Assembly: GCA_000708835.1 (NCBI GenBank)
Contig: DF237229.1
Span: 49,704 to 113,703 of the forward strand
Reading direction: 5' to 3'
Length of the DNA stretch: 64,000 nt
Source: Klebsormidium nitens
Taxonomy: Eukaryota; Plantae; Klebsormidiophyceae
Positions 2,716 through 45,400 of this stretch are shown one piece after another; the first letter of the stretch is position 1; every line of letters starts with the position of its first letter. The notes beneath the pieces are model-generated. The model saw nothing but the letters and a program-made list of their open reading frames with translations. It did not search any database and was not told where the DNA came from. A program made the translations under genes and the position numbers.

Positions 2716-4186
2716 CTAGTTGTAGAAGTTGTTGCCCAACTCGTCCACTAAAGTCTTGAGAGCTGAGCTAGCTGGTATTTCAAAGTCAATTGTGTCCAAG
2801 AGTTGCGCAGATGAGACGTAATGTGGAGGTTCTTGGAACGTGATTACAACATCTGGATAACACTTTTGCAAATCAATGGCTCTCTTTGCAAGTCCATCTA
2901 TTGGACCCGCAATGTGCCTCAGATCTACATCCAGAGCCCTCAGATTAGGACAGCAACTCAGGACCTTGGTCATTAACCTGAAATCCTCCGAATTTCTCAC
3001 GCTAAATTGGATGGACTTCAGGAGGGCAAAACGGATGCTCTCCAAAGCCTGGCTGCAATTGATGGACTCGTACAACTGACCAATTCCGGTCCCCATTTGA
3101 TATTCTACTACCGTATGAGGCAAGATTTGTAGAAAAGTTGCCAGCGGACATCGCTCGCTTGCTATTGCCCAGTATTCAACGTTGATGTCGAGGTTGACCT
3201 TGTCAAAACTCTCAAACGTCTGTAAAAGCGTCTCCACATTACTCACATGCCAATTCCCACCTTCAAACCGCAACTCGGTGAGGCTAAACTTGCGGTTCCC
3301 AAGTTCTAAGGACTCTATTGCCCCGGTAAAAGTCACACTTGTCTATTTCGGTGCTTTCAAGATGAGTCTGCTTAGCCGAGGGACTCCTTTGAAGGACTGC
3401 AGGTTGGGTGCATTTATCACCAGATTGCCCCGGATGATTGCACGGAAGAAGTCTAGCTTTTCTAGTGTACAAGACTTTAACTTTGGCTCCTGCAAACCAG
3501 GGCAGTACTTGAGGCTAAGTACCTTCAGTGCAGGCGCCTGAGTCAGCAAGGAGTGCAGGAACTGGTCGGAGATAGTTGCACCTTCCAGTCGCACTTCCAA
3601 AAGGTTGTTGAATGCCAGCAGTCCTCCCCAAGGGAACTTGGAAAGCAAACCCCGAATGCTTCAACAGCACGGTCTCGAGAGGGAGGGCTGCCAGAAGCCT
3701 CCAAAGCTGAGAGGATGCTTCCTCGGTCCGCGGACATTGACCACTGAGCAGGGCAAAGACCCTTAGGTTGGTGCACTGCCTCAGGATGGCAGTCAGCAAC
3801 TCAATCGATGCACAGACCTGCACCTTCAGTGGATCGCCTTCGAACGTCCGGGTGTAATGCAAGGCCAAGCTGCGGAGATGAGGACCCATCTGAGTGACCG
3901 CTTGCACACCCACCATGCTCCCCAGCGTATCGGAAAAGTCCCAGAAGACATGTCTAGCAGCTGCCAGAGCGTTCAATGCTCTAAATCTTTTACAGACCAC
4001 CGACAGTTGGCCCAAGCTCCGGGCGAAGACCCAGTGGCCCTCCCCAGCCACAGCTGGGATGGCTGGGAGCGGCCACACTTCCAAATGCGCGTCTTGCTTT
4101 TCCGCTGCTCTCTCCAGTATCTTCTGCAGAAGCTCGTCATCGAGCTGGTCAAAAGTGCAGCCGCCTCTGTGCTGTCCGCTGGCCAT
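2716..4186 (-). pseudogene. Intronless F-box/LRR (FBD-type) gene with a 1-nt frameshift (~3650) and an in-frame TAG (3343-3345)
   Basis: N-terminal F-box (FDQLDDELLQKILE...LSVVCKRFRAL) followed by LRR-like repeats (LRSLAL, LKVLSLKYCPGL, CPNLRALDV). The reading frame shifts by +1 at CATTCGGGGTTTG. LKAPK-TAG-TSVTF then continues in the same frame into ORF 2716-3336. Confidence 0.75.
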
Positions 4187-34046: not shown

Positions 34047-35106
34047 CCGTATGTGATACCTATGCTGAGTCAAAAATGATCGACTGAGTCGTTACGAAGA
34101 TGGGGCGGTGCCAACACTAGTGATCGGCCAGGGTTAGCGGTGCATGGCAGAGTCGGAAATCCCGAACGGATCATCACTTGTTCCTCCGCCGGCCGCCTGC
34201 ATGCGGGGCCCATGCACCTGCCTTTGTGTGGTATCGAAATTTGGGCCGTCCGATGACTGCCTTGTCGTCAATCGCACCGTGACAGTCTAAAGTTGCGCGC
34301 AGCGGTTTGCGGCCCGGCGCCCCACGCCGTCACGGTGAAGCGGCTCGCCCAGCTCTCCCGGGCAAATTTTCCTGCTGACCAACCTTCTTCCGATAACCTA
34401 ACCGATCGTAACCCCGCATACTATCAAAGATGCCCATCAACACTAACCCCGATAAGTAACCCAGATATACCAGCTAACGAAGCAGGTGAACCCACCGAAG
34501 CACGTCAATATAGTCTGGCGGTCCCAGACTGCTCCGGATATTGCGGAACTCGGCCCGCAAAGTGCGGAGCGTCAGGAGCTTTTTTCCGACATACAAAAAA
34601 GTGCCATGCATGTCGCGCCGCGCGCGACCGCAAATCGACCAAGCCCGACCAAGACGAATGGCACTACATGCTACGCATCGAAATTCGGCTAAGCGAACGG
34701 CCAGTCCAAAATCGTAGGCTGATGCGGCTGGTCGAACTTTTGTCAGTTACCAAAGGCTATAGGTTGCCTTTGAAAAGGCAAGCCAATATACAGGATAGCG
34801 GAAAGTGACCGGAAATCCACCTGGGCACTCCTGATCCGCTGCGCTACAGGGGCGATTCCGGTCACCAAAAGCTGTGCAGCGGAGATGGACAAGTTAGTCC
34901 TAAAGGGAGAGATCAGATCCCAGGCAAAATGCACCACACACACCGCCGCATTGCACACCAGGGCGCTGGGAATGGCAGTGATTGGCAGTGAAGGCCGCAA
35001 TGGAAGATGATCTATGAAGGATCCAGAGGTCTGTTAATGCTCCATAGACATCTGCACCGTCTGAGTCATTGGTGCGCAGCGGAATGTGGCGGCTGCGTGA
35101 GGCGCT

Positions 35107-38100
35107 ATGTTCAAGTTTAGGGGTTACCTGCTCTGGCTGGCATGCTCCATTCTCGCCCTGTCGTTCATAATCAATGCCGGCCTGCCTTGGCTGCTCTCCT
35201 GCGAGGGGTCGCTCTGGTTGAATGGGGGTGTCACTCCTTCGGGAGGCCCATTAGGGGTTGTCCTCCCTTTCAATGCCAAGGAACTACCACGTGTCATTGA
35301 TGCGTTGAAAAGTTGGCCCTATCCCTGCACCACAGGAAAGCTCCAGAAAGACTCCGTTCTGATCCTTTATGGGGACGCTGACCTCAGTGTCAGCTCGGAG
35401 GCGGGAAGCCGCCTGCGCAGCGAGGTGGCGCGGGTGCAGGGGGTTGGTCAGTGCTTTGGAAATGTCGTCTACCTGACGCTGCCGCCTTATACGGATGGGG
35501 CCATGATCTATGATAAGCGGGAGGAGGACGGGGAGATCGGGCGGGGCCGCAACACTCTGTTTTACACCTTTATGCTTGAGCTGATGTCAGCAAATGGATC
35601 GGAGGTGCACGGATTGGGTCTGCGCCATGTCCTATGGATGGAGCCTGATGTGCAAGCAAGGGCCCCGGTGAGTACTGGCAGGGGTTTGTGTCCGCTTTTG
35701 TTCATTGACTGGTGGCGTTCCCTGATAAACCGTGGTCCACTCAACCGAGGTCTTGAGGTCGGCGCTGATCGGTTCAGGAAGCATTCATGAAGCTGCACAC
35801 TTACTGTTTTGCAAACTGATTAGGATAGAAGCACCTTCTGCACCTTCTGGTTGGAGCAGCAACAAACCAGGTCTTTCTTCGATCTGAAAAGGGACAATGA
35901 TAACTCTCCTTGTCACACAAAAGAAGAACTGCTTTGATGGTGGCAGCTGAGCAAGTATTTTTTTCACACACTATCTGCTGCAGAAAGTGCTTGGTTTGAA
36001 GTGCTCTTATTCATGTCGAACCCCACTCGCAGAGATGCAAGCTCATATCAGCATGCCAATCCAAAATGTTCCGTTATGGGAAGGAACAAATCGCCTCACA
36101 TGAACAAAGATTGAGAACTCTGGAAGGCTAAGAAGAGAACAGAATGATTAGTAAGCCACTTGTCAATGTTGCCAATTGTCAGCTTCTCAGAATGCATCAG
36201 GAGCTTCTCATGCATGCACTGCTGGAATCAAGTATGTAAGTGAAAAGCAATAGACATAGTTGATCATGCCTCATTCCCTCCCTTCCCTCCCTTTCCCTCC
36301 CTAGCCGAAAGGAGGGACCAAGTGCATTTCAGCAACCATGAGATTCAGGATTTCTGACTTTTTGAGAGGATCATGTTATGGAAATTGTATGAAGTGCTCA
36401 GAGACCAATGAGTCCCTTCCCACAGGGCTGGCTGGAGCGCGTGCACCGCGAAGCCGCGCGCCCGTTGTACTGGATCCAAGGCAGCAGCTACCGCGGCAAG
36501 TGCCTCCCCAATGAGGCCGACGGCACCTGCAGCTGGGTCGGGCGCGACGCGCTCGGCTACATTGGTGCGAACGCCCTCTACCACACAGCAGACCCGGACC
36601 TGCTGACCCTTCTGCACGACACCAGCCGGGGCCCATTCGCACTTCGCCCGTTCGACCGCGCGATCTACCAGCACCTAAGCATGGCCTACCCGGAATACCG
36701 GCACAGGGATGCGATGCACTTGTACGAGAGGGTGGATTGGGTGCGGGACTACGGGCGGTACCCTGCGCCCGAGCGAGTTCCGGAGCACGTGATTTTGCTG
36801 CATCAGGAGCACCCGGTGTTGGAGGAGGTGGGGGATAACTATGTCGCCGAGGCGGAAAACGATATCGACAAGGGGTTGAAGGCGGAGGACTTTCAGGAAA
36901 CGGCGTTGAACTTGCAGCAGGAGCTGCTGCAACTGCAGAGCGGAACGGCCCAGGAAGGTGAGCTGACTCGTCAGAACGTGATGGAAGATGCCGTCGAGCT
37001 TTGTTGGCTGATGAGTTCTGCACGTGATTGGGACAATCTCACAAGAATTCGATAAAAGCTACGTCTTAAGCTCGCTCGAACCGCTCCTCTTGTAAAAGTT
37101 CGTACAGACATTGCATTCGTCCTCAGCTCCCCATCATCTGTTCACTTCCTTTATCCAACCTCGGTGCAGCCTCTCTTTGGGTCTTGTTGAAAGTCCGCTG
37201 AGCTTCGAAGGTTTGCGGAGACATGCAGTACCCACCCGAGACTTCCTCCTTTTGAATTTTTTTCGAAGCTGTGCAGCACGGCAGACATCCTGCTAGTTTA
37301 AATTTGTTTGTCCACCAATCTGCTGTCCTGAGCAGATGCAGGTTCTCGTCAGGTTCCTATCTACAAGGTTTTCGTTATTCAATCAGCGTCTTCAAACCAG
37401 GAGCAATTGATTGTGTCAACAATCTCAAAGTAACCCGCTCCTGTCTCCAGGTGACGACAGCCCCCTGAAGAACCCGCCCCGCGACCGAACCCTCACCGCC
37501 GCGCTCGCCAAGGTTGCCACGCCCCGCAAGCAGATTTTGCTCGTTCTAGTTAGTGACGGGTACCACGACCTCCTCGCTAACTTCCTGCACTTCGCCTCTA
37601 AGCACGACCTTTCTCGCCACACTCTTGTGGCTGCGCTCGATGTACCCTCGGTGGCGCTTCTAAAACGGCCGTCCGGGGTTACGGCCTGGGTTGACCTAAC
37701 CGACCACGAGTTCCGCGGCGAGGGCGTGCCGCCGTTCGATCCGGCGGACCCCGAGGGAAGCCTAAAGGTCCTCCGCCTGAGCCTGATGCGCAGGTGTCTG
37801 GTGCAAGGCTATAGGGTACTGAGCTCGGACCTCGACGTCGTGTGGCTCAGAAACCCGTTTCAGGCCGCATACTTCTCAGACGAGTTGGATTTTTGGATCC
37901 AAAGCGACTCGCACACTGGGTTCGTCGAAACCACCAAGGGGGGCCTCCGGGAAGTCTTTGTGTCTGCGGGACTTTCGTACGCTGTACCCTCCGTTCGGAC
38001 CATCCGATTCCTAGCCGCAGCACGGCACATGGCTCGCGAACATCCGGAGCTGAGCGAGCAGCAAATCCTGCGGTTATCGTTAACGGTCAACCGTTACCGG

Positions 38101-41100
38101 TTGCGCTGGCGCGCACTGGAGCCCGCACTGTTCCCAAACGGCTTCCTCTACTGGGAGCAAACCTTTCCGCAGTCGCTCGGGGTCCAGCCGATCGCAGTGC
38201 ACAACAACATGGCCGAAAGCAAGGCCGCGAAAGTGTACCGGTTCCGGGAGGCCGGTTTTTGGAGCGCGGACGAGGCGCTAAGCCCGGAGGCCATTCGCAC
38301 CGGCGAGAAGAAGTACCTGGCATACATGGGCATGGTGTTCGACAACGGGCTGGGGAATAGGCGCGTGGAGCTGAGGCAGGCGCTGGCCATCAGCGAGGTG
38401 AGGCTCAACTGGAGGTTATGGGGGCATGACATAGCCTATGGGAGGCGCTTACATGTCAGAACAAGAAGCTCCCGTGCTGGCGTGCTGTTGAAGTATGCGT
38501 CATATTCGCTATGTCAGTTGTCACGTGTCAATCCGCAGTGTTGGGCCCGGACATGAGTTGCATCCGCATTGTTCTTCTTTTTGGTACAGCAATATGTGAA
38601 GCGTTGCGCTTCAATACGAAAGCCGCCCGTGTTCGGAACGCACGGCCTGATACTTTGAGATTGCTGCAAGTCCGTTTCAAAACACAGAAGAACAGCGTAC
38701 TTACACACAGTGGGTCCCACGACTCTCTGAAGTCGCCTGGACAGCACGTCACGACAGCTCCCTCTCTTCATCGGCGAGCGCTCCTCTCAGAGCCATTTGA
38801 CAACTTCAATCCGAATCGTGTAGACTGTCCTCGTCTCACTACCACCTCGATTGAAGTCCTCAAAGAACCGTCCACAAAAGTCTTTCTTTCAATCCTTCAA
38901 ATCAAAAGGTTTGAGTCCGAGAACGAGGCGGAAACACATAAAATTGCACTCCCAGGCCTTACATTCTCGGACGTCCCTTTTGCAGCTGCTGGGCCGGACG
39001 CTCATTCTGCCGGTGCTGCACCGAGAGCACGAGGAGGACACCCCGGTCACTGTGGACTACTTCTTCGACTTCGACACGCTCACCGCCCACTTCCCGGACG
39101 TCGAGCCGCGCAGCCTGCTGGAGCGCGCGTTCCCCGACTGGCAGACGATGCCCGTGCACGACATCGACATCAAGCTGGCGCTGCCGGAGAATGTCACGGC
39201 GACGGGGCGGCCGCAGGTGAGGCCACGTGGCCTGGCGCCTACTTCCTTTCATAGCATGTTATTCTTCTGAATCTGGTGGCCAGAGAGCATAGCAGCCGCC
39301 GAGAATGTTTGTTCTGCCGAAACCTCGCTCCAGGGCTTCTTTCGTGGCGCTTTATCATAGTATTCGGAGTGCCAAGTTCTGAAGGGCAGCGGCAAGAGTA
39401 GGCTCCTTCTGAGGTGTGTCTTTCAAGAGATGGAACGCAGAGGTCCATTCAGCAGCGTGTTTGAACCACTGCGCACAAACAAGACCGTCACTTGGTCATC
39501 ATGCACTTTTACAAGCGTCAGTCAATCACCTGCTTTCTCCTGCCTCACCCTTTGACGCCTAAACGCAGCCGCCAGGGGGTGGTGACGTCAAACATTGTGG
39601 TACTGACGCCAGTTTGCTTGTGCAGGACGTGTCGTGGGAGGAGCGGTTGCAGCGAGTGGAGGGCGAGTGGCACCCCAACGGCGCCACCCCGGCGGAAATC
39701 CTGGGATGGTACGGCGACCGGCAGGAGCCGCTGCTGGTCTTCTACAGCACATTCAGGAGGTGAGAGATTTCTGGCTAGACGTCCAAATCCCCATGCCTGG
39801 TAGAACCATTGAGGGCTGAAAAACTCTCTGCGGGTACACGAGTGATTGTGAATCTTCCGGGTGTTTTTCTTCCCGTTGATAGCCGTGCGGGCTCATCAGA
39901 AAGGGCGATGCGAAGGATTGACGTGGAAGATTAGGAAGCACGACAACGTGCTCAGATCGAAAATTACTGCGAGGGCGGCTCGTCATGATTTCCTCTCCTT
40001 TGAAGTCTACGTTTTGTAGCCAAACTGCTTCTTCAAAAGTTGCTAATAAACAGAGAGCTCTATTACCAGAGCGCCGCGCCAACTGCAACCCCAATTGGGC
40101 TCGGCCAGGATAACCCTGCGTCGTCCGATCAGCTACGGCGTTGCCGTATTGCCGGACCCTGTCTCGAAGAGCTTCCATGGGAGATTCAGACCCGACTTCT
40201 TCGTGCACCAACCCTTTTCCCATGTTGGAGCGCTCTCTTTTGACTTTTGCTTGCTCGGGTGCCCAGGTTTGGCGGCTTCGAGGACAAGAAAAAGGATGCC
40301 GACTTTGAGGAACGAGTGTTCCAGGGCATTGTCCCAACCAGGAAGACGAGAGAAGTCGCAGACAGCATACACGTGGCAGTCAAAGCGGCTGCCAGGCAGG
40401 CGGCCGGGAAGGACGAGTTTAGCTGCTTGCATGTCAGGTACGTCACTTCCGTCGCGCTGCTGAGGTTGACATAGATCACTAGTCGGTTGAGTTGGTTGGA
40501 ACGCCGAGGTGACGTTTACCTTACCTCTGAAATCATCTGGCAAGTCGCGACTTGCATAATCCAAATGCTGCATACTGATCAAAATACGCTTGTGACGCTA
40601 CAACCGTTAATGAAACGGGCTTATGATATGCTGGAAGTTGAGCAGATTCGCTTCGTTGCTACACTGGTGTTGAAATGCCCTGCGTCCGGGTAAGTTGTCA
40701 GAATGTGAGCCCACAGCTTTCCTCCTCACCAATGTTGCTGTTCCGACTTGCAGGCGAAAGTCGTTCCTGGTCGTGCACTCCGGCACCGAGAAGCCCATGG
40801 CCGAGCTGGTCAAGCTGCTCCCGGATCACCTCCCCCTCGACCGGGCCCTCTATGTAACGACGGACGATCCGTCGGAGGACATGCGGTCGACGCTGGAAGC
40901 AGCCGGCTTCCCAAAAGTGATGTTTATGGGCGATTTCTATCCGCCGTGGCACCGTAGTTTAGTGGAAGGAACCACGGGCGCAAAAACCATGCGGCATGGG
41001 CAGATAGATCAGTTGGTGTGCGCGCAGGCGGAGACGTTTGTCGGGAACGAGTACTCGACGTTCACGTTCCACATCGCGTGGCTGCGGGAGCGGTATGGGA

Positions 41101-41162
41101 AGAAGCAGGTGTGTCGGGATATCTATGGGCGCGAGAAAACGCCGGGCATGGTTTACCAGTAG
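35107..41162 (+). CDS. Type II membrane multi-domain glycosyltransferase: uncharacterised GT-A-like domain + GT77/nucleotide-diphospho-sugar transferase + O-fucosyltransferase-like domain; 7 exons (35107-35667, 36426-36957, 37451-38397, 38986-39216, 39626-39759, 40267-40437, 40754-41162), 994 aa
   Basis: N-terminal TM (YLLWLACSILALSFII). Domain 1: VLWMEPDV...YWIQGSSYRG...GANALY. Domain 2: LVAALD, VLSSDLDVVWLRNPF, FPNG, HNN..K..RFRE.GFW. Domain 3: NGLGNRRVELRQALAISELLGRTLILP, SCLHVR, LYVTTDD, DQLVCAQAETFVGNEYSTFT. All six junctions are phase-consistent. Confidence 0.88.
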
Positions 41163-42433
41163 GAGCTCAGGAGATGCAGGTATGTGCGTTGTCTGCATAC
41201 GTGTACGATACCTCAGTCGCAAGCCGCCAACGAGGCCCCCTCCGAGTCACAAATTGCACCGCTAAAGTGCAATCCAACTAGGCTGTCAGTCGCAGGGTCT
41301 AGATCTCGCCCAGGACGGACTTGAACACCGATCAAGAGCAGAGCGCGAACCCGGATCAACGAAGTGATGGCAGCCATTAGGAGCTCTGAAGTTTAGGAGC
41401 GTAGCTAGCTAGCTAGCAAAGCCTGTCGTTGCACGTGTTTGAGGCACCAGGTCACGAGCAGCCAAGTTAAAGTGTCCGGTCGCGCTGAAATGTATTCATC
41501 CAACTAATCATTAACTATAGGTATATCACCTTTTGAAGTCCAACAGCTTTATCCATCAAAATTATACTCTTTCAAGTAAAGGCATGTCAGAGAGCTGATG
41601 GAGCTACGGTCACATCATCAATCGATAATGCGCTGCTAGTCATGATTGCTCATATGAAAAGGATAGCCCTGAGTGATCATTTTGAAACCCCCATACAAGT
41701 CGTTGCACGTTTCAAATAAGCTAGTTGTGTAACTTGAACGATCTGCATGCACTGATGACTCGGACTTTTGGGAATCGTGATCGTGAAATTGCAATTCTAC
41801 GCGTACATATGTGGCACGGCATATATGGATCAACGATCAATCGGTCAAGTCAATTGCACGTCTTGGCGCGCGCAGTCGATGCAAGACCCACGTTCTGAGA
41901 TCGATCAAGCTAGAATTCGATCGGCTTGCATATATATATAATTGCTGATATCGATCGGTGCGTGCCAATGCACGTATGGGCTGCCGGGTCCGTTCAATCA
42001 GTCCAACTAAGTCGTACGTCGCATGCATGACATCAAGACTCAGCTTTATCAAACGTGAGTATCCGATCATTTCCACTCATGCAGAGCCTTGCGTGATAGC
42101 TTTCATCTTCAGGCTAATTGGCGGTTCATTGGATTTGGATTTGTTTCCTCTACTGTCTTCATGCACGATGATCGATTCATTAGTTGCCGCAGTGCATGAG
42201 TCTCTATTTTCCGGTCGACGCTTAGTAGGCTTCTCTAGCTATGTTCTACCATAGAGACAATTCTAGTGGCCACACCTGCCGCACACATGCGCGGCATGTA
42301 TGACAATTCACCGCCGATACAAAACTCTAGCTGGCAATTAGCTTGTCTACATTCTAACGTCTCCATGCACAACGGAGCTGTTTTTCACTAGCATTAAGTT
42401 AGCAGTCACTATGTATGGTCGAGAGGCGGCTCG

Positions 42434-45400
42434 TCACCTTCCTTCTAACTCAGTTATCTGTCCTGACCAAGCAGACCGGTTGAACTCAATATCTTGAGTC
42501 GTTGAGACACCAGACGAGTTTGACTCGGTGTAATCTAGACCTCGCCGGTAAAAGTCGCTTTGCGAGAATGGGTTAAGCATAACCCTTTTTGACAAGCACC
42601 CATCGCCGCTCAGCGGGCGAATGACAACTTCCCTCCCTTCCGAGCTGGAACTACTTGACGTTACCAGGACCCCTTCCTCGATCCGCTCTAGTTCGATGCG
42701 CACATCGCTTATGGTAGGTCGGCGCCTAGGGTCCTTTTTTATACACGCGAGCGCCAACTTGCAGAACGCGTCTAAGCTGAAGGCCGGGTATTGATTCACC
42801 ATACGAGGGTCGGCAACGGACGCGATGTCGCCCTCCAGAAACAGAGGGATCACCTGCGGAAACATAAGAGAAGGAATAGCAGAAACATATCATAGAAAAA
42901 GTATCAGGCTCTCAAGCAACATCAGACGCATATCTCAGCGGCTTAGTCTGATGGGCAGCGGAATATTACTACCACCTTGTGCTCAAGAATCGCCCATGGA
43001 AGGTCCTTATCTCTATGTTGAAGGTCAATGTTCGGATGAATTGCGCACAAATGCTGATGGCCACAGACTGCTGAGAATATTTACTGACCTGTAACCAGAA
43101 ATACATCCGCCCGCCTCTTCGCTTCTCCCGGACGTGCGTCAATCAGAATGGCCAGCCTTAACGCTGCAACTAAGTCTCCTCTTCCGCTGTCGTTTCTAGT
43201 TACCATTCATCCATCTTTCGGCGACAATCTTTGAAAACGAGTAACAAAAAGCGGTGTGCTGTCTCACCCACGCGAGCAGGTTCGTCCGCTGTCCTTCGCC
43301 GTTGATGCCAATGACTGGTTTCCCGGTGGCTAGCTCCAGCAGGCAGATCCCAAAACTGTAAACATCTGCAATCGAGGACTCGTCGTCAACGCCTTGTGAA
43401 AGCAGACCATGAGACTCGTCAAGAAAACTCTTCCAAGTGCAAATGTCTGGAAAGCGAGCGGAAGTAGAACGGTTGGACAGTTGAGCAACAGAGGCCGCGA
43501 GAACGAAACACGACCATGCGCCAGTCTGGATCGATTAGCTCGTGTTTAGGGACGAGCAAACCTTTGCTATTTGTCGAGACCGTGCTAAATCTTCATAAAT
43601 GCTTTGCAACGTAGACTAGTTTACTTAGCAGGCCAGCCTTTGGGCTCCTACAGATGTTGACACAGTGCTTTCATCGAGTTGATTGATGCCAGACTGAGGG
43701 GCCAAGCAGACTCACCGGATGCGGTCGTCAGCTCGTTGTACTCCACATAGTTCGGATCCAGATAGCCTGCGGCAGCAACGACGAAAACCTCAGTCCTCAA
43801 ACTAAGGAGATCCTGGCAATCGAACCTCTCAGTAGAGATCGCAAGCGAGAGCACAGCCGAGTAAACGGTCACTGTACATGTTCCATCAGCGGACGTCATG
43901 GTTTTGCGAAAATTGCTCATTTGCGGCCACATTCTCCATACACTAAACCTCCTATCGGCCGTTTGTATCGGCTCACTCTGGGGACTACGGTGGAGCTGTC
44001 GCGATCGGACGCAGATTGAGCGCATTGCCTTCCGGACATGAGACGACGCTCGTCGTCTCTCAAAGCTTTTTCATTTGCAATGCGTCAACGAGACAATCTG
44101 CTGGAAAGCCTCACCTATGGTCCCCTTGACTCCCGTGGCCCCCGCGTCGAAGTCCGCCTCCATTTTGCTGATCCCAAAGTCGCCCACCTTGGCGTTGAAT
44201 TGTGCGTCTAGCAGAATGTTGGTGCACTTGACGTCTGCACACGTAAACGATTGGAGGCGTTCCGGAAGAGCAAACTCGACGCGTCATGTCCTTCGACGGC
44301 CGATTTTGCATTGGAGCGTTAAAGAATAGCTCAAGGTTTGTACTGACGGATAAACGTGGGGCAAAGCAGCAAAGAACACGCGAAGGTGAAAGAGAGAATC
44401 GCAATGGAATCGCGCATGAGGTCCCAACACAAAACGTCGCTAAGGAGACGAAGTGCATAACGCAGATGTTTACGTACCTCGATGTATGCACGGAGGCTCC
44501 ACCGCCGTGTGCAGATACTCCAGACCTGCAAGGACGAGGCCAGCTGACGTCATGCTTCGCTTGTCGCGAGACCTGCGTGGTGCAGACATCAGGGTAGCAC
44601 GTTCCTTGTACGTTTGCAACCGTGGCGTAAAATCTTGGGCTCAACTGGCGCGGCATAGTAGGAAGGGGGAAAAGTCGAGGGCTATGAATCCTCGAATCAA
44701 GAAAGTCGAGGAAAAGACTGTGGTGCTCCCAATCACCAACGTCGGTCTATGTACAAACAAAGGTAGATCCGCGAACCCGCTCTGTTCCTGCGAGCACCGT
44801 AAGTGGCGGCTCCATCTACAAAGTCTGGATGCCTAAGAAGGCATCCCACAGTCAGGGTTGGGCAGATCATTGTTGAAATACAACACAAAGAACTAGAATT
44901 TCCGTGACTGCTCAATTTGGAACTGGGTTCCACAACCTCAGTTGACCACAGCACCTCGCTGACCTACCTTAAGAGCTGTCTCCGCAATTGTGCGTCGTGT
45001 TCGTACTTGGACGTATGAAAGGATGCGCTAAATGAAACTTACGGACAAAATCAACTTTTCGTTCCGAGACCCTTGAGACGCGCAGCCTTACCTCTCGCCG
45101 CTCCAATGGCCATTTTGAGCCGGGTCGCCCATGCGATGTAGCCCGCAGATGCAAGTGAGCCTGGCAACACAGCAACAATCGTCAATTCTTTCGTTGTAAC
45201 CCAGTATCATCCTGAGCACTTCCGCTTGACAAGCGTCCACTGGAAGGGATACGGGACTGCATCCGACGCGATCTGCCTGCGCTCAATAGTCTGAAAGCAG
45301 CCTGCGCATCATTGCGCGCCGCTTTCCCACGGTCATCATGAGCGGCGCCAAATCCGTTGACCACCCGCTCGAGCTGATGCATAATTAAAGGTGTCGGGCA

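Follow-up and report, generated by a model that had tools for sequence, protein, structure and literature searches.

The question raised by this locus is how many glycosyltransferases may be carried on a single chain and which of them are likely to be working. The window, by which we mean the whole 64,000-nucleotide (nt) stretch of Klebsormidium nitens DNA that was analysed (contig DF237229.1, assembly GCA_000708835.1, positions 49,704 to 113,703 of the forward strand), contains at 35107-41162 on its forward strand a gene of seven phase-matched exons, which together comprise 2985 nt and encode 994 amino acids (aa) followed by the stop codon TAG. The product would be a single membrane protein of type II in the secretory pathway, with a Golgi-type topology, in which an N-terminal anchor is predicted to be followed by an unclassified module of the GT-A fold (the N-module), an acidic linker, a GT77 module (a DxD/metal-dependent GT-A fold, presumably retaining) and, directly abutting it, a module resembling the protein O-fucosyltransferases (the POFUT-like or C-module, an inverting GT-B fold). 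On balance we think it probable that the second and third modules are active in succession and that the N-module has changed or lost its activity. Tethered on one luminal chain, the GT77 and POFUT-like modules would then add two different sugars successively to one acceptor, as do LARGE1, K4CP and PgtA of Dictyostelium; such sequential glycosylation is plausible. The N-module appears to have kept its fold-defining cysteines and EPD motif and to have parted with two conserved His and the NG of the family motif HINGNALY, and would most likely act in binding or scaffolding, or else have become a transferase of new specificity.

A preliminary description of the locus, made from the letters alone, had proposed this 994 aa open reading frame (ORF) with its N-terminal anchor, and the coordinates, intron phases and hydropathy all agree with it. 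The six introns are all bounded by GT..AG, with phases of 0, 1, 0, 0, 2 and 2, and the intron-1 junction (EPDVQARAP/GWLERV) aligns without gaps to EPDTVPLRDGWLDAV of the homologue P0007, thus providing independent support for this splice site. Residues 7-31 form the hydrophobic membrane anchor, with a maximum Kyte-Doolittle 19-mer mean of 2.14 at residues 8-26 and K3 and R5 lying upstream, whilst the linker between the N-module and GT77 has 52 residues, of which 13 are acidic and two basic. Every motif named in that description was located in the protein: MEPD (aa 178-181), the DxD of SDLD (aa 491/493), HNN (aa 615-617), GLGN (aa 664-667), LHV-R-RKSF (aa 856-863, across the exon 6/7 junction), TTDD (aa 894-897), WLRNPF, FPNG and DQLVC...FVGNEYSTF.

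The transcript evidence points to a single mRNA. In each of four public sequencing runs from four studies (X1, X5, X9 and X11) one contig of 3547-3734 nt extends across all seven exons, and neither separate transcripts nor termination in intron 1 or 2, outcomes which would have divided the protein, were seen in them. The contigs join the exons at 35666/36425, 36955/37449, 38395/38984, 39212/39622, 39757/40265 and 40434/40751, each joint falling on GT..AG once its shift is applied, and the spliced contigs have no mismatches, extra letters or gaps relative to the genome. Read depth was 44-109 in exons versus 0-9 in introns, and public runs contained 45-61% of the words sampled from these 5963 bases, which is approximately the exonic share. 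There is the possibility that two or three adjacent genes have been wrongly merged or that the assembly is chimeric, as contigs on their own are generally no proof of a single molecule and the RNA label of the runs was guessed. However, an identical full-length spliced contig of even depth occurs in four independent studies, GT77 and the start of the POFUT-like module both lie within exon 3, the seven exons are laid out colinearly at two other genomic loci and uninterrupted proteins of this type exist in other organisms; we therefore regard an artefact as scarcely credible.

Two introns gave signals of their own. Low-depth contigs (depth 3-9, versus 44-109 in exons) cover intron 5 (39760-40266) in all four runs. 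If this intron were retained, a TGA at 39761-39763, directly after exon 5, would end the protein in the middle of the POFUT-like module, giving it the shape of GT77 plus half an O-fucosyltransferase (O-FucT) domain that is also found in a separate clade of relatives described below; these contigs may be only pre-mRNA. In intron 1 a pyrimidine-rich repeat of CCCT/CCCTT type (36271-36302) was skipped in read mapping, and X1 contains a low-depth (2.2) joint of the 'opposite strands' type at 35843/35979.

An exhaustive HMMER search with exon 3 returned 568 matches, only four of which were below 1e-30. The best match, at 79% identity, was P0001, an ORF equivalent to exon 3 that belongs to a related organism and is encoded on a metagenome contig of 58 kb (L001); another, P0188, 95% identical to exon 3, lies on the Logan contig L002. 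Both contigs contain all seven exons in the same order and free of stops, at identities of 69-86% for L001 (exon 5, 86%) and 91-98% for L002, and the introns of L001 cannot be aligned to those of the window. The ratio of non-synonymous to synonymous substitution (dN/dS) between the window and L002 was 0.067 for the N-module, 0.062 for GT77 and 0.073 for the POFUT-like module, at a synonymous divergence (dS) of approximately 0.4; against L001 the corresponding values were 0.15, 0.10 and 0.09 at dS >1. Purifying selection is equally strong on all three modules. Within intron 3 of L001 (5732-5803), approximately 150 nt upstream of exon 4 proper, the beginning of this exon also recurs in degenerate form (LLGRI..VIHQEHGEDTPV; 50% identity over 28 aa, E 2e-4); the window has no such copy.

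The architecture of more distant relatives was mapped by searching the fetched proteins with phmmer and hmmsearch, the queries being the exons and two profiles, A1 for the N-module and A2 for the C-module. All three modules, in the order seen in the window, were found in at least 10 other protein clusters, including P0007, P0011, P0025, P0091, P0116, P0151, P0164, P0167 and P0182, and the N-modules of these relatives match the family profile at E values of 1e-89 to 1e-120. Among those with names are proteins of the chytrid Quaeritorhiza haematococci (P0007, HK102_004281, 1200 aa) and of Rhodotorula toruloides (P0182, 969 aa, labelled 'Proteophosphoglycan ppg4'), whilst the P0116 cluster (941 aa) includes Tara and ENA marine assemblies. 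Versions truncated at the N- or C-terminus also occur (P0002, P0003, P0004, P0083 and P0109), as do two-module proteins of GT77 and O-FucT in Hyaloraphidium curvatum and Leucosporidium creatinivorum.

In a tree of 123 GT77 modules (quick maximum-likelihood search, LG+G4), built from the fetched relatives with no authentic XEG113, RRA or RGXT sequence among them, the window, P0001, all rows with the three modules and all those with a full O-FucT domain fall into one clade of 22 rows with a Shimodaira-Hasegawa approximate likelihood ratio (SH-aLRT) support of 99. A separate clade of 24 rows, which includes P0088 from the annelid Owenia fusiformis, consists of proteins of 490-620 aa in which GT77 precedes just the N-terminal half of an O-FucT-like domain, and this suggests that an extension by the first Rossmann half is integral to that branch. 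The window protein is thus a member of a widespread, uncharacterised eukaryotic family of three-module proteins and not an algal one-off. The combination of a third N-terminal module with a full O-FucT-like domain had been thought unprecedented; instead, the same order is found in fungi and marine eukaryotes within one GT77 clade. Automatic annotations of fungal proteins already show the pairing of GT77 with O-FucT, and a literature search on the PF03407 and PF10250 pairing, three-domain transferases and streptophyte-algal GT77 found no description of the three-module architecture or of the N-module.

It had also been proposed that the gene is connected to XEG113 and the extensins. Under such a reading the protein would be an extensin beta-arabinosyltransferase of XEG113/RRA type to which further domains have been added, with hydroxyproline-rich glycoproteins of the wall as its substrates, and this reading has in its favour the common GT77 fold family, the arabinosylation of extensins by characterised plant GT77 members of clades A and C (PMC3797821, PMC3342304) and the first half of an O-FucT-like domain in the 24 relatives above, which is consistent with the partial extension of XEG113 named in the preliminary description. 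However, the window falls in the full-O-FucT clade, apart from these half-domain proteins, and its nearest named relatives are fungal (Rhodotorula, Leucosporidium, Hyaloraphidium and Quaeritorhiza), which argues against a role specific to extensins or to algal walls; we know of no extensins in fungi. Nor was there a land-plant name among the 20 proteins looked up from the top 150 exon-3 matches. A word-index protein search with alignment A3 retrieved the fungal relatives, with no plant GT77 and not the window protein itself; in the same type of search the N-module region of P0007 retrieved only itself and the region-restricted exon-3 ORF only its close relatives P0188 and P0001. The connection to extensins is therefore not supported and we consider it very unlikely.

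The middle module is a canonical GT77. Searches took the spliced protein one exon at a time, and exon 3 matches PF03407 (Nucleotid_trans) with 66.6 bits, well above the cut-off of 22 (E 3.9e-18), in agreement with the GT77-type domain described at the outset. All 12 invariant columns of a 15-row alignment (A4) are kept, including D491/D493 of SDLDVVW, NPF, FPNG and H615-N-N617; in exon 3 numbering the columns are N43, G119, D126, D128, P135, Q203, L222, G230, H250, N252, K260 and W270. To judge from these residues there is no reason to doubt that the GT77 module is active.

The same mode of searching divided the PF10250 domain of the C-module over five exons. Exon 7 thus reached 27.9 bits (2.4e-6) against a cut-off of 31.5 and exon 4 gave only a weak match (0.11), whilst uninterrupted relatives exceed the cut-off (P0011, 55 bits; P0182, 51.5; P0005, 45). 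With phmmer, exon 4 matched P0005, P0002, P0006 and P0011 at 1e-7 to 1e-9, and exon 7 alone matched POFUT2 chains over the IDQ..STF motif (IDQLVCAQAETFVGNEYSTFTF). Profile A2, of 13 rows including four exon pieces from the window, matched human POFUT2 (4ap5; E 4.6e-9) and, across positions 18-306 of 324, also POFUT1 (5ux6; E 2.5e-5). A full-length model of the Rhodotorula homologue P0182 (predicted local distance difference test score, pLDDT, 83.1; predicted template modelling score, pTM, 0.67) has three folded modules, with disorder only between the N-module and GT77 and no break from GT77 to the GT-B module. Its best matches in the PDB are POFUT2 and POFUT1 (E 1e-10; template modelling score, TM, by target 0.56-0.58). 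The complete GT-B domain of O-fucosyltransferase type that had been read from the motifs is thus borne out by the profiles, and modelling of the homologous chain predicts a complete POFUT-like fold. Its first motif (GLGN...ALAISE) lies downstream of GT77 in exon 3 and is continued in exon 4 with LLGRTLILP; since the start of the domain shares an exon with GT77, the linkage of the two modules does not depend on splicing.

Most of the residues expected of a working POFUT-like module are in place. R294, D371 and S387-T388-F389 of POFUT2 are given as critical in a passage of PMC10481521 that cites Chen 2012. H292-L-R294-R295 of POFUT2 aligns with H857-V-R859-R860 of the window, so that the catalytic Arg is kept, and so are the residues for nucleotide binding, D371 (ATDA) aligning with D896/897 (TTDD) and S387-F389 with S960-T961-F962 (STF). 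The Asp of the HxRRxD motif, present in POFUT2 and the fungal relatives, is not kept: the window has Ser862 (RKSF), L002 likewise RKSF and L001 RRSF. The reading of HVRRKSF as a variant motif in the preliminary description was correct, but the argument drawn from it for an altered donor specificity is weakened, as POFUT2 itself has HLRRKDF and only the Asp is changed; a Lys in place of Gly is not unusual, and it is only in comparison with the H(I/L)RRGDF of the fungal relatives that there are two differences. Overall the window retains 22 of 28 conserved C-module columns, with one invariant Cys replaced by Ala.

A subgroup of marine and metagenome relatives (P0116, P0058, P0096, P0052 and P0083) is instructive in this respect. 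Its members have C(I/V)D.S... in place of C.H.RR.D and (A/P)ST in place of STF; to judge by these motifs the POFUT-like fold is retained and its catalytic signature lost. Loss of the catalytic signature therefore need not entail loss of the module, and this lends something to the idea that only one module of the window protein is catalytic, most likely GT77, with the other two being degenerate folds which bind the acceptor or product or hold a complex together. The Ser and Ala substitutions point in the same direction, as does the finding that the best structural match of the N-module, COLGALT1, is a tandem protein with two GT-A folds. However, the window retains H857, R859/R860, D896/897 and S960-T961-F962, positions held critical in POFUT2 in the passage cited above, together with the 22 conserved columns, whereas the marine proteins have lost the His and Arg-Arg; we consider a single catalytic module to be rather improbable.

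The N-module has no family assignment. Exons 1 and 2 have no match in Pfam and five N-modules of the family have none even at E 10; a sequence search of the PDB returned nothing for exons 1, 2 or 3 alone. With BLASTP, exon 2 matched P0007 (1e-22), P0011 (5e-19) and P0002 (2e-12). The fold could be approached through a homologue: an AlphaFold model of P0116:1-330, made with the 13-row alignment A1, has a pLDDT of 80.4, a pTM of 0.80 and a GT-A fold. Foldseek placed it closest to COLGALT1, with further matches to XXYLT1 and glycogenin (E 1e-7 to 1e-5), and VIA-align gave Z scores of 12-13.7 to XylT1, Fringe, LARGE1 and glycogenin, the highest (13.7) being to XylT1 (6ej8) and Manic Fringe (2j0b). 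More than 130 chains matched at Z >= 8, of which those listed are of GT-A type with no one family prominent. The GT-A-like N-terminal module of the preliminary description thus finds support in a confident model of a homologue.

Across the 12 other N-modules 44 columns are at least 90% conserved; the window is identical at 30 of these and different at 14. It retains EPD, the four Cys, WI.GS and PFD. The full family signature (W..GPN..F, (M/L)EPD, WI.GS, HINGNALY, PFDLA and VHS) is not present in it, the changes including W115I, P119R (GPN to GRN), H196Y, N198G and G199A (HINGNALY to YIGANALY), L229R, N258D and H280G, the last of which removes the His of VHS; exon 1 reads GRGRN where the family has W..GPN. 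All 14 changes are common to L001, and GRGRN and YIGANALY were also seen in the L002 translation, in which only these motifs were compared; the changes are thus old and fixed and not errors. As 14 of the 44 family-conserved residues have been replaced, catalysis by the N-module in the window lineage appears doubtful.

The preliminary description had seen in the three domains an assembly line in which all of the modules are active and build a defined trisaccharide, or place three sugars in order, on one acceptor. The retention of EPD and the four Cys is consistent with this, as are a dN/dS for the N-module as low as that of the other two and the conservation of the three-module order in fungi, protists and the organism of the window. 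Against it, the window N-module is without the two conserved His, the Pro of GPN and the Asn-Gly pair of HINGNALY, residues which are invariant in 12 of 12 other members; three active enzymes are thus a weakened proposal, which we regard as possible though unlikely. Equally tentative is a related suggestion, that the N-module founds an unclassified glycosyltransferase family, that the three-module proteins are true single-chain assembly lines and that module 1 has been re-tuned here to a new donor or acceptor. The family might then build a unit of two or three sugars on a secretory-pathway acceptor common to fungi, marine protists and the alga.

Our preference for two active modules with an altered N-module should be considered with caution, as several points weigh against it. 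The GT-A-like fold of the N-module is predicted from homologues 23-37% identical to it, to which the window module was aligned only in two exon pieces. The case for lost catalysis is drawn from residue conservation only, because the comparison of the N-module profile with GT77 was not significant, and a dN/dS equal to that of the other modules would be expected of an active enzyme and of a scaffold alike. The POFUT-like module might also be impaired, since the Asp of HxRRxD is replaced by Ser and an invariant Cys by Ala. Lastly, the type of the runs (RNA) is a guess, yet intron-less contigs of high depth cannot derive from genomic DNA.

Two further comparisons were made for the N-module. A diverged copy of GT77 or GT8 is not indicated, as hhalign found no significant relation between the N-module profile A1 and the GT77 profile A4 (E 0.52); equating HINGNALY with the metal-binding His or with the N.G donor strand, tempting as it may be, would thus be conjecture. 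At3g56750, considered as a counterpart, is instead a FucT-like GT-B protein. In the ESM Atlas the nearest entries to P0116:1-310 have a length of 230-295 aa, stand alone and belong to no Pfam family (features 0.97; shape TM 0.6-0.8), mostly from phage-rich data and labelled Uroviricota, with one cluster of 522 members automatically named 'Glycosyltransferase family protein'; this likeness to phage-borne proteins is a lead only.

The closest parallels to the window protein are P0182, P0007 and P0116, which share its module order, anchor, similar length and GT77 clade. They are 26-37% identical to it and keep the HINGNALY, GPN and VHS motifs that have changed in the window lineage, whereas in the marine subgroup it is the HxRR motif, kept in the window, that has been lost; the names of all these relatives are automatic and none has been characterised. 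XEG113 and RRA1-3, which are extensin beta-1,2-arabinosyltransferases, RGXT1-4, which are alpha-1,3-xylosyltransferases of rhamnogalacturonan II (RG-II), and AgtA of Dictyostelium have the PF03407 fold family, DxD, H.N and type II topology in common with the window protein (PMC3797821). Unlike it, they have no N-terminal GT-A module, and its own nearest named relatives are fungal. With POFUT2 (GT68) and POFUT1 (GT65) the window protein shares the GT-B fold, and its IDQLVCA..FVGN.YSTFTF aligns with IDQWICA..FIGTSVSTFSF, but identity to the window module is only approximately 16-18%, the motif Asp is Ser in the window and the module is fused behind GT77. The POFUTs are soluble enzymes of the endoplasmic reticulum which act on folded epidermal growth factor or thrombospondin type 1 repeats, and no such acceptor is implied for the window protein.

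Three transferase folds on one eukaryotic chain are uncommon. LARGE1 (GT8 and GT49), K4CP of E. coli, COLGALT1, LH3, WbbM and PgtA of Dictyostelium all have at least two transferase folds per chain working on one acceptor, and the two tandem GT-A folds in the model of P0182 resemble those of K4CP, COLGALT1 and LARGE1 (E 4e-9 to 1e-7). These proteins are, however, of other families and in another order, and none of them has two GT-A folds with a POFUT-like GT-B. Multidomain glycosyltransferases have been discussed elsewhere (bioRxiv 10.64898/2026.06.04.729992); such transferases are well known and it is the three-module architecture that appears to be the new part. In LARGE1 and the chondroitin polymerases tethered enzymes let the cell fix the order of sugars; here a three-fold version, apparently undescribed, is conserved in basidiomycete yeasts, chytrids, marine protists and an alga, with a first module that has no family assignment and with GT77, known from the synthesis of plant extensin and RG-II, paired with a POFUT-like fold. 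The product of a three-module enzyme, once known, would assign a function to the whole family, would probably define a new CAZy family and would reveal whether the common pairing of GT77 with a FucT-like domain is a functional unit. For annotation, the value lies in a verified gene model and in not taking the gene for an XEG113 orthologue by default.

The coordinates of the gene are collected in Table 1, in which the ends of the untranslated regions (UTRs) were extrapolated from contig positions, the stretch compared with the contigs having started at 35200.

Table 1. Exons, landmarks and predicted UTRs of the three-module gene (window coordinates; aa numbering of the 994 aa protein).
Feature	Position	Strand	Content	Basis
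Exon 1	35107-35667	+	aa 1-187; start codon, type II signal anchor, first half of N-terminal GT-A-like module	
Exon 1 landmarks	anchor nt 35125-35199; EPD nt 35641-35649	+	EPD aa 179-181	ORF, donor site, hydropathy, alignment
Exon 2	36426-36957	+	aa 188-364 and base 1 of codon 365; second half of N-module, then acidic linker	
Exon 2 landmarks	YIGANALY nt 36558-36581; linker nt 36801-36957	+	WIQGSSYRGKC; YIGANALY; PFDRA; linker	
Exon 3	37451-38397	+	aa 365-680; end of linker, whole GT77 module, first POFUT-like motif	
Exon 3 landmarks	DxD nt 37828-37836; HNN nt 38200-38208; GLGN nt 38347-38358	+	DxD of SDLDVVW; HNN; GLGN, then RRVELRQALAISE	
Exon 4	38986-39216	+	aa 681-757; POFUT-like module, LLGRTLILP motif and next strand/helix	
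Exon 5	39626-39759	+	aa 758-801 and two bases of codon 802; middle of N-terminal half of POFUT-like module	
Exon 6	40267-40437	+	aa 802-858 and two bases of codon 859; C-L-H-V of the C.H.RR donor-binding motif at its end	
Exon 7	40754-41162	+	aa 859-994 and stop TAG 41160-41162; R-RKSF completing HVRRKSF	
Exon 7 content		+	C-terminal Rossmann half of POFUT-like module, with TTDD and IDQLVCAQAETFVGNEYSTFTF	
5' UTR (predicted)	34941-35106	+	approximately 166 nt	35200 is position 260 of X1 contig
3' UTR (predicted)	41163-41558	+	approximately 396 nt	X1 contig is 3547 nt, 41162 is its position 3151

Neither paralogues nor pseudo-exons of the gene were found inside the window. On the reverse strand at 42434-42865 the end of an ORF resembles a plant receptor-like Ser/Thr kinase in its C-terminal lobe (FCKLALACIKKDPRRRPTISDVRIELERIEEG), with a tail rich in Ser behind it; a neighbouring gene in convergent orientation probably has its last exon here.

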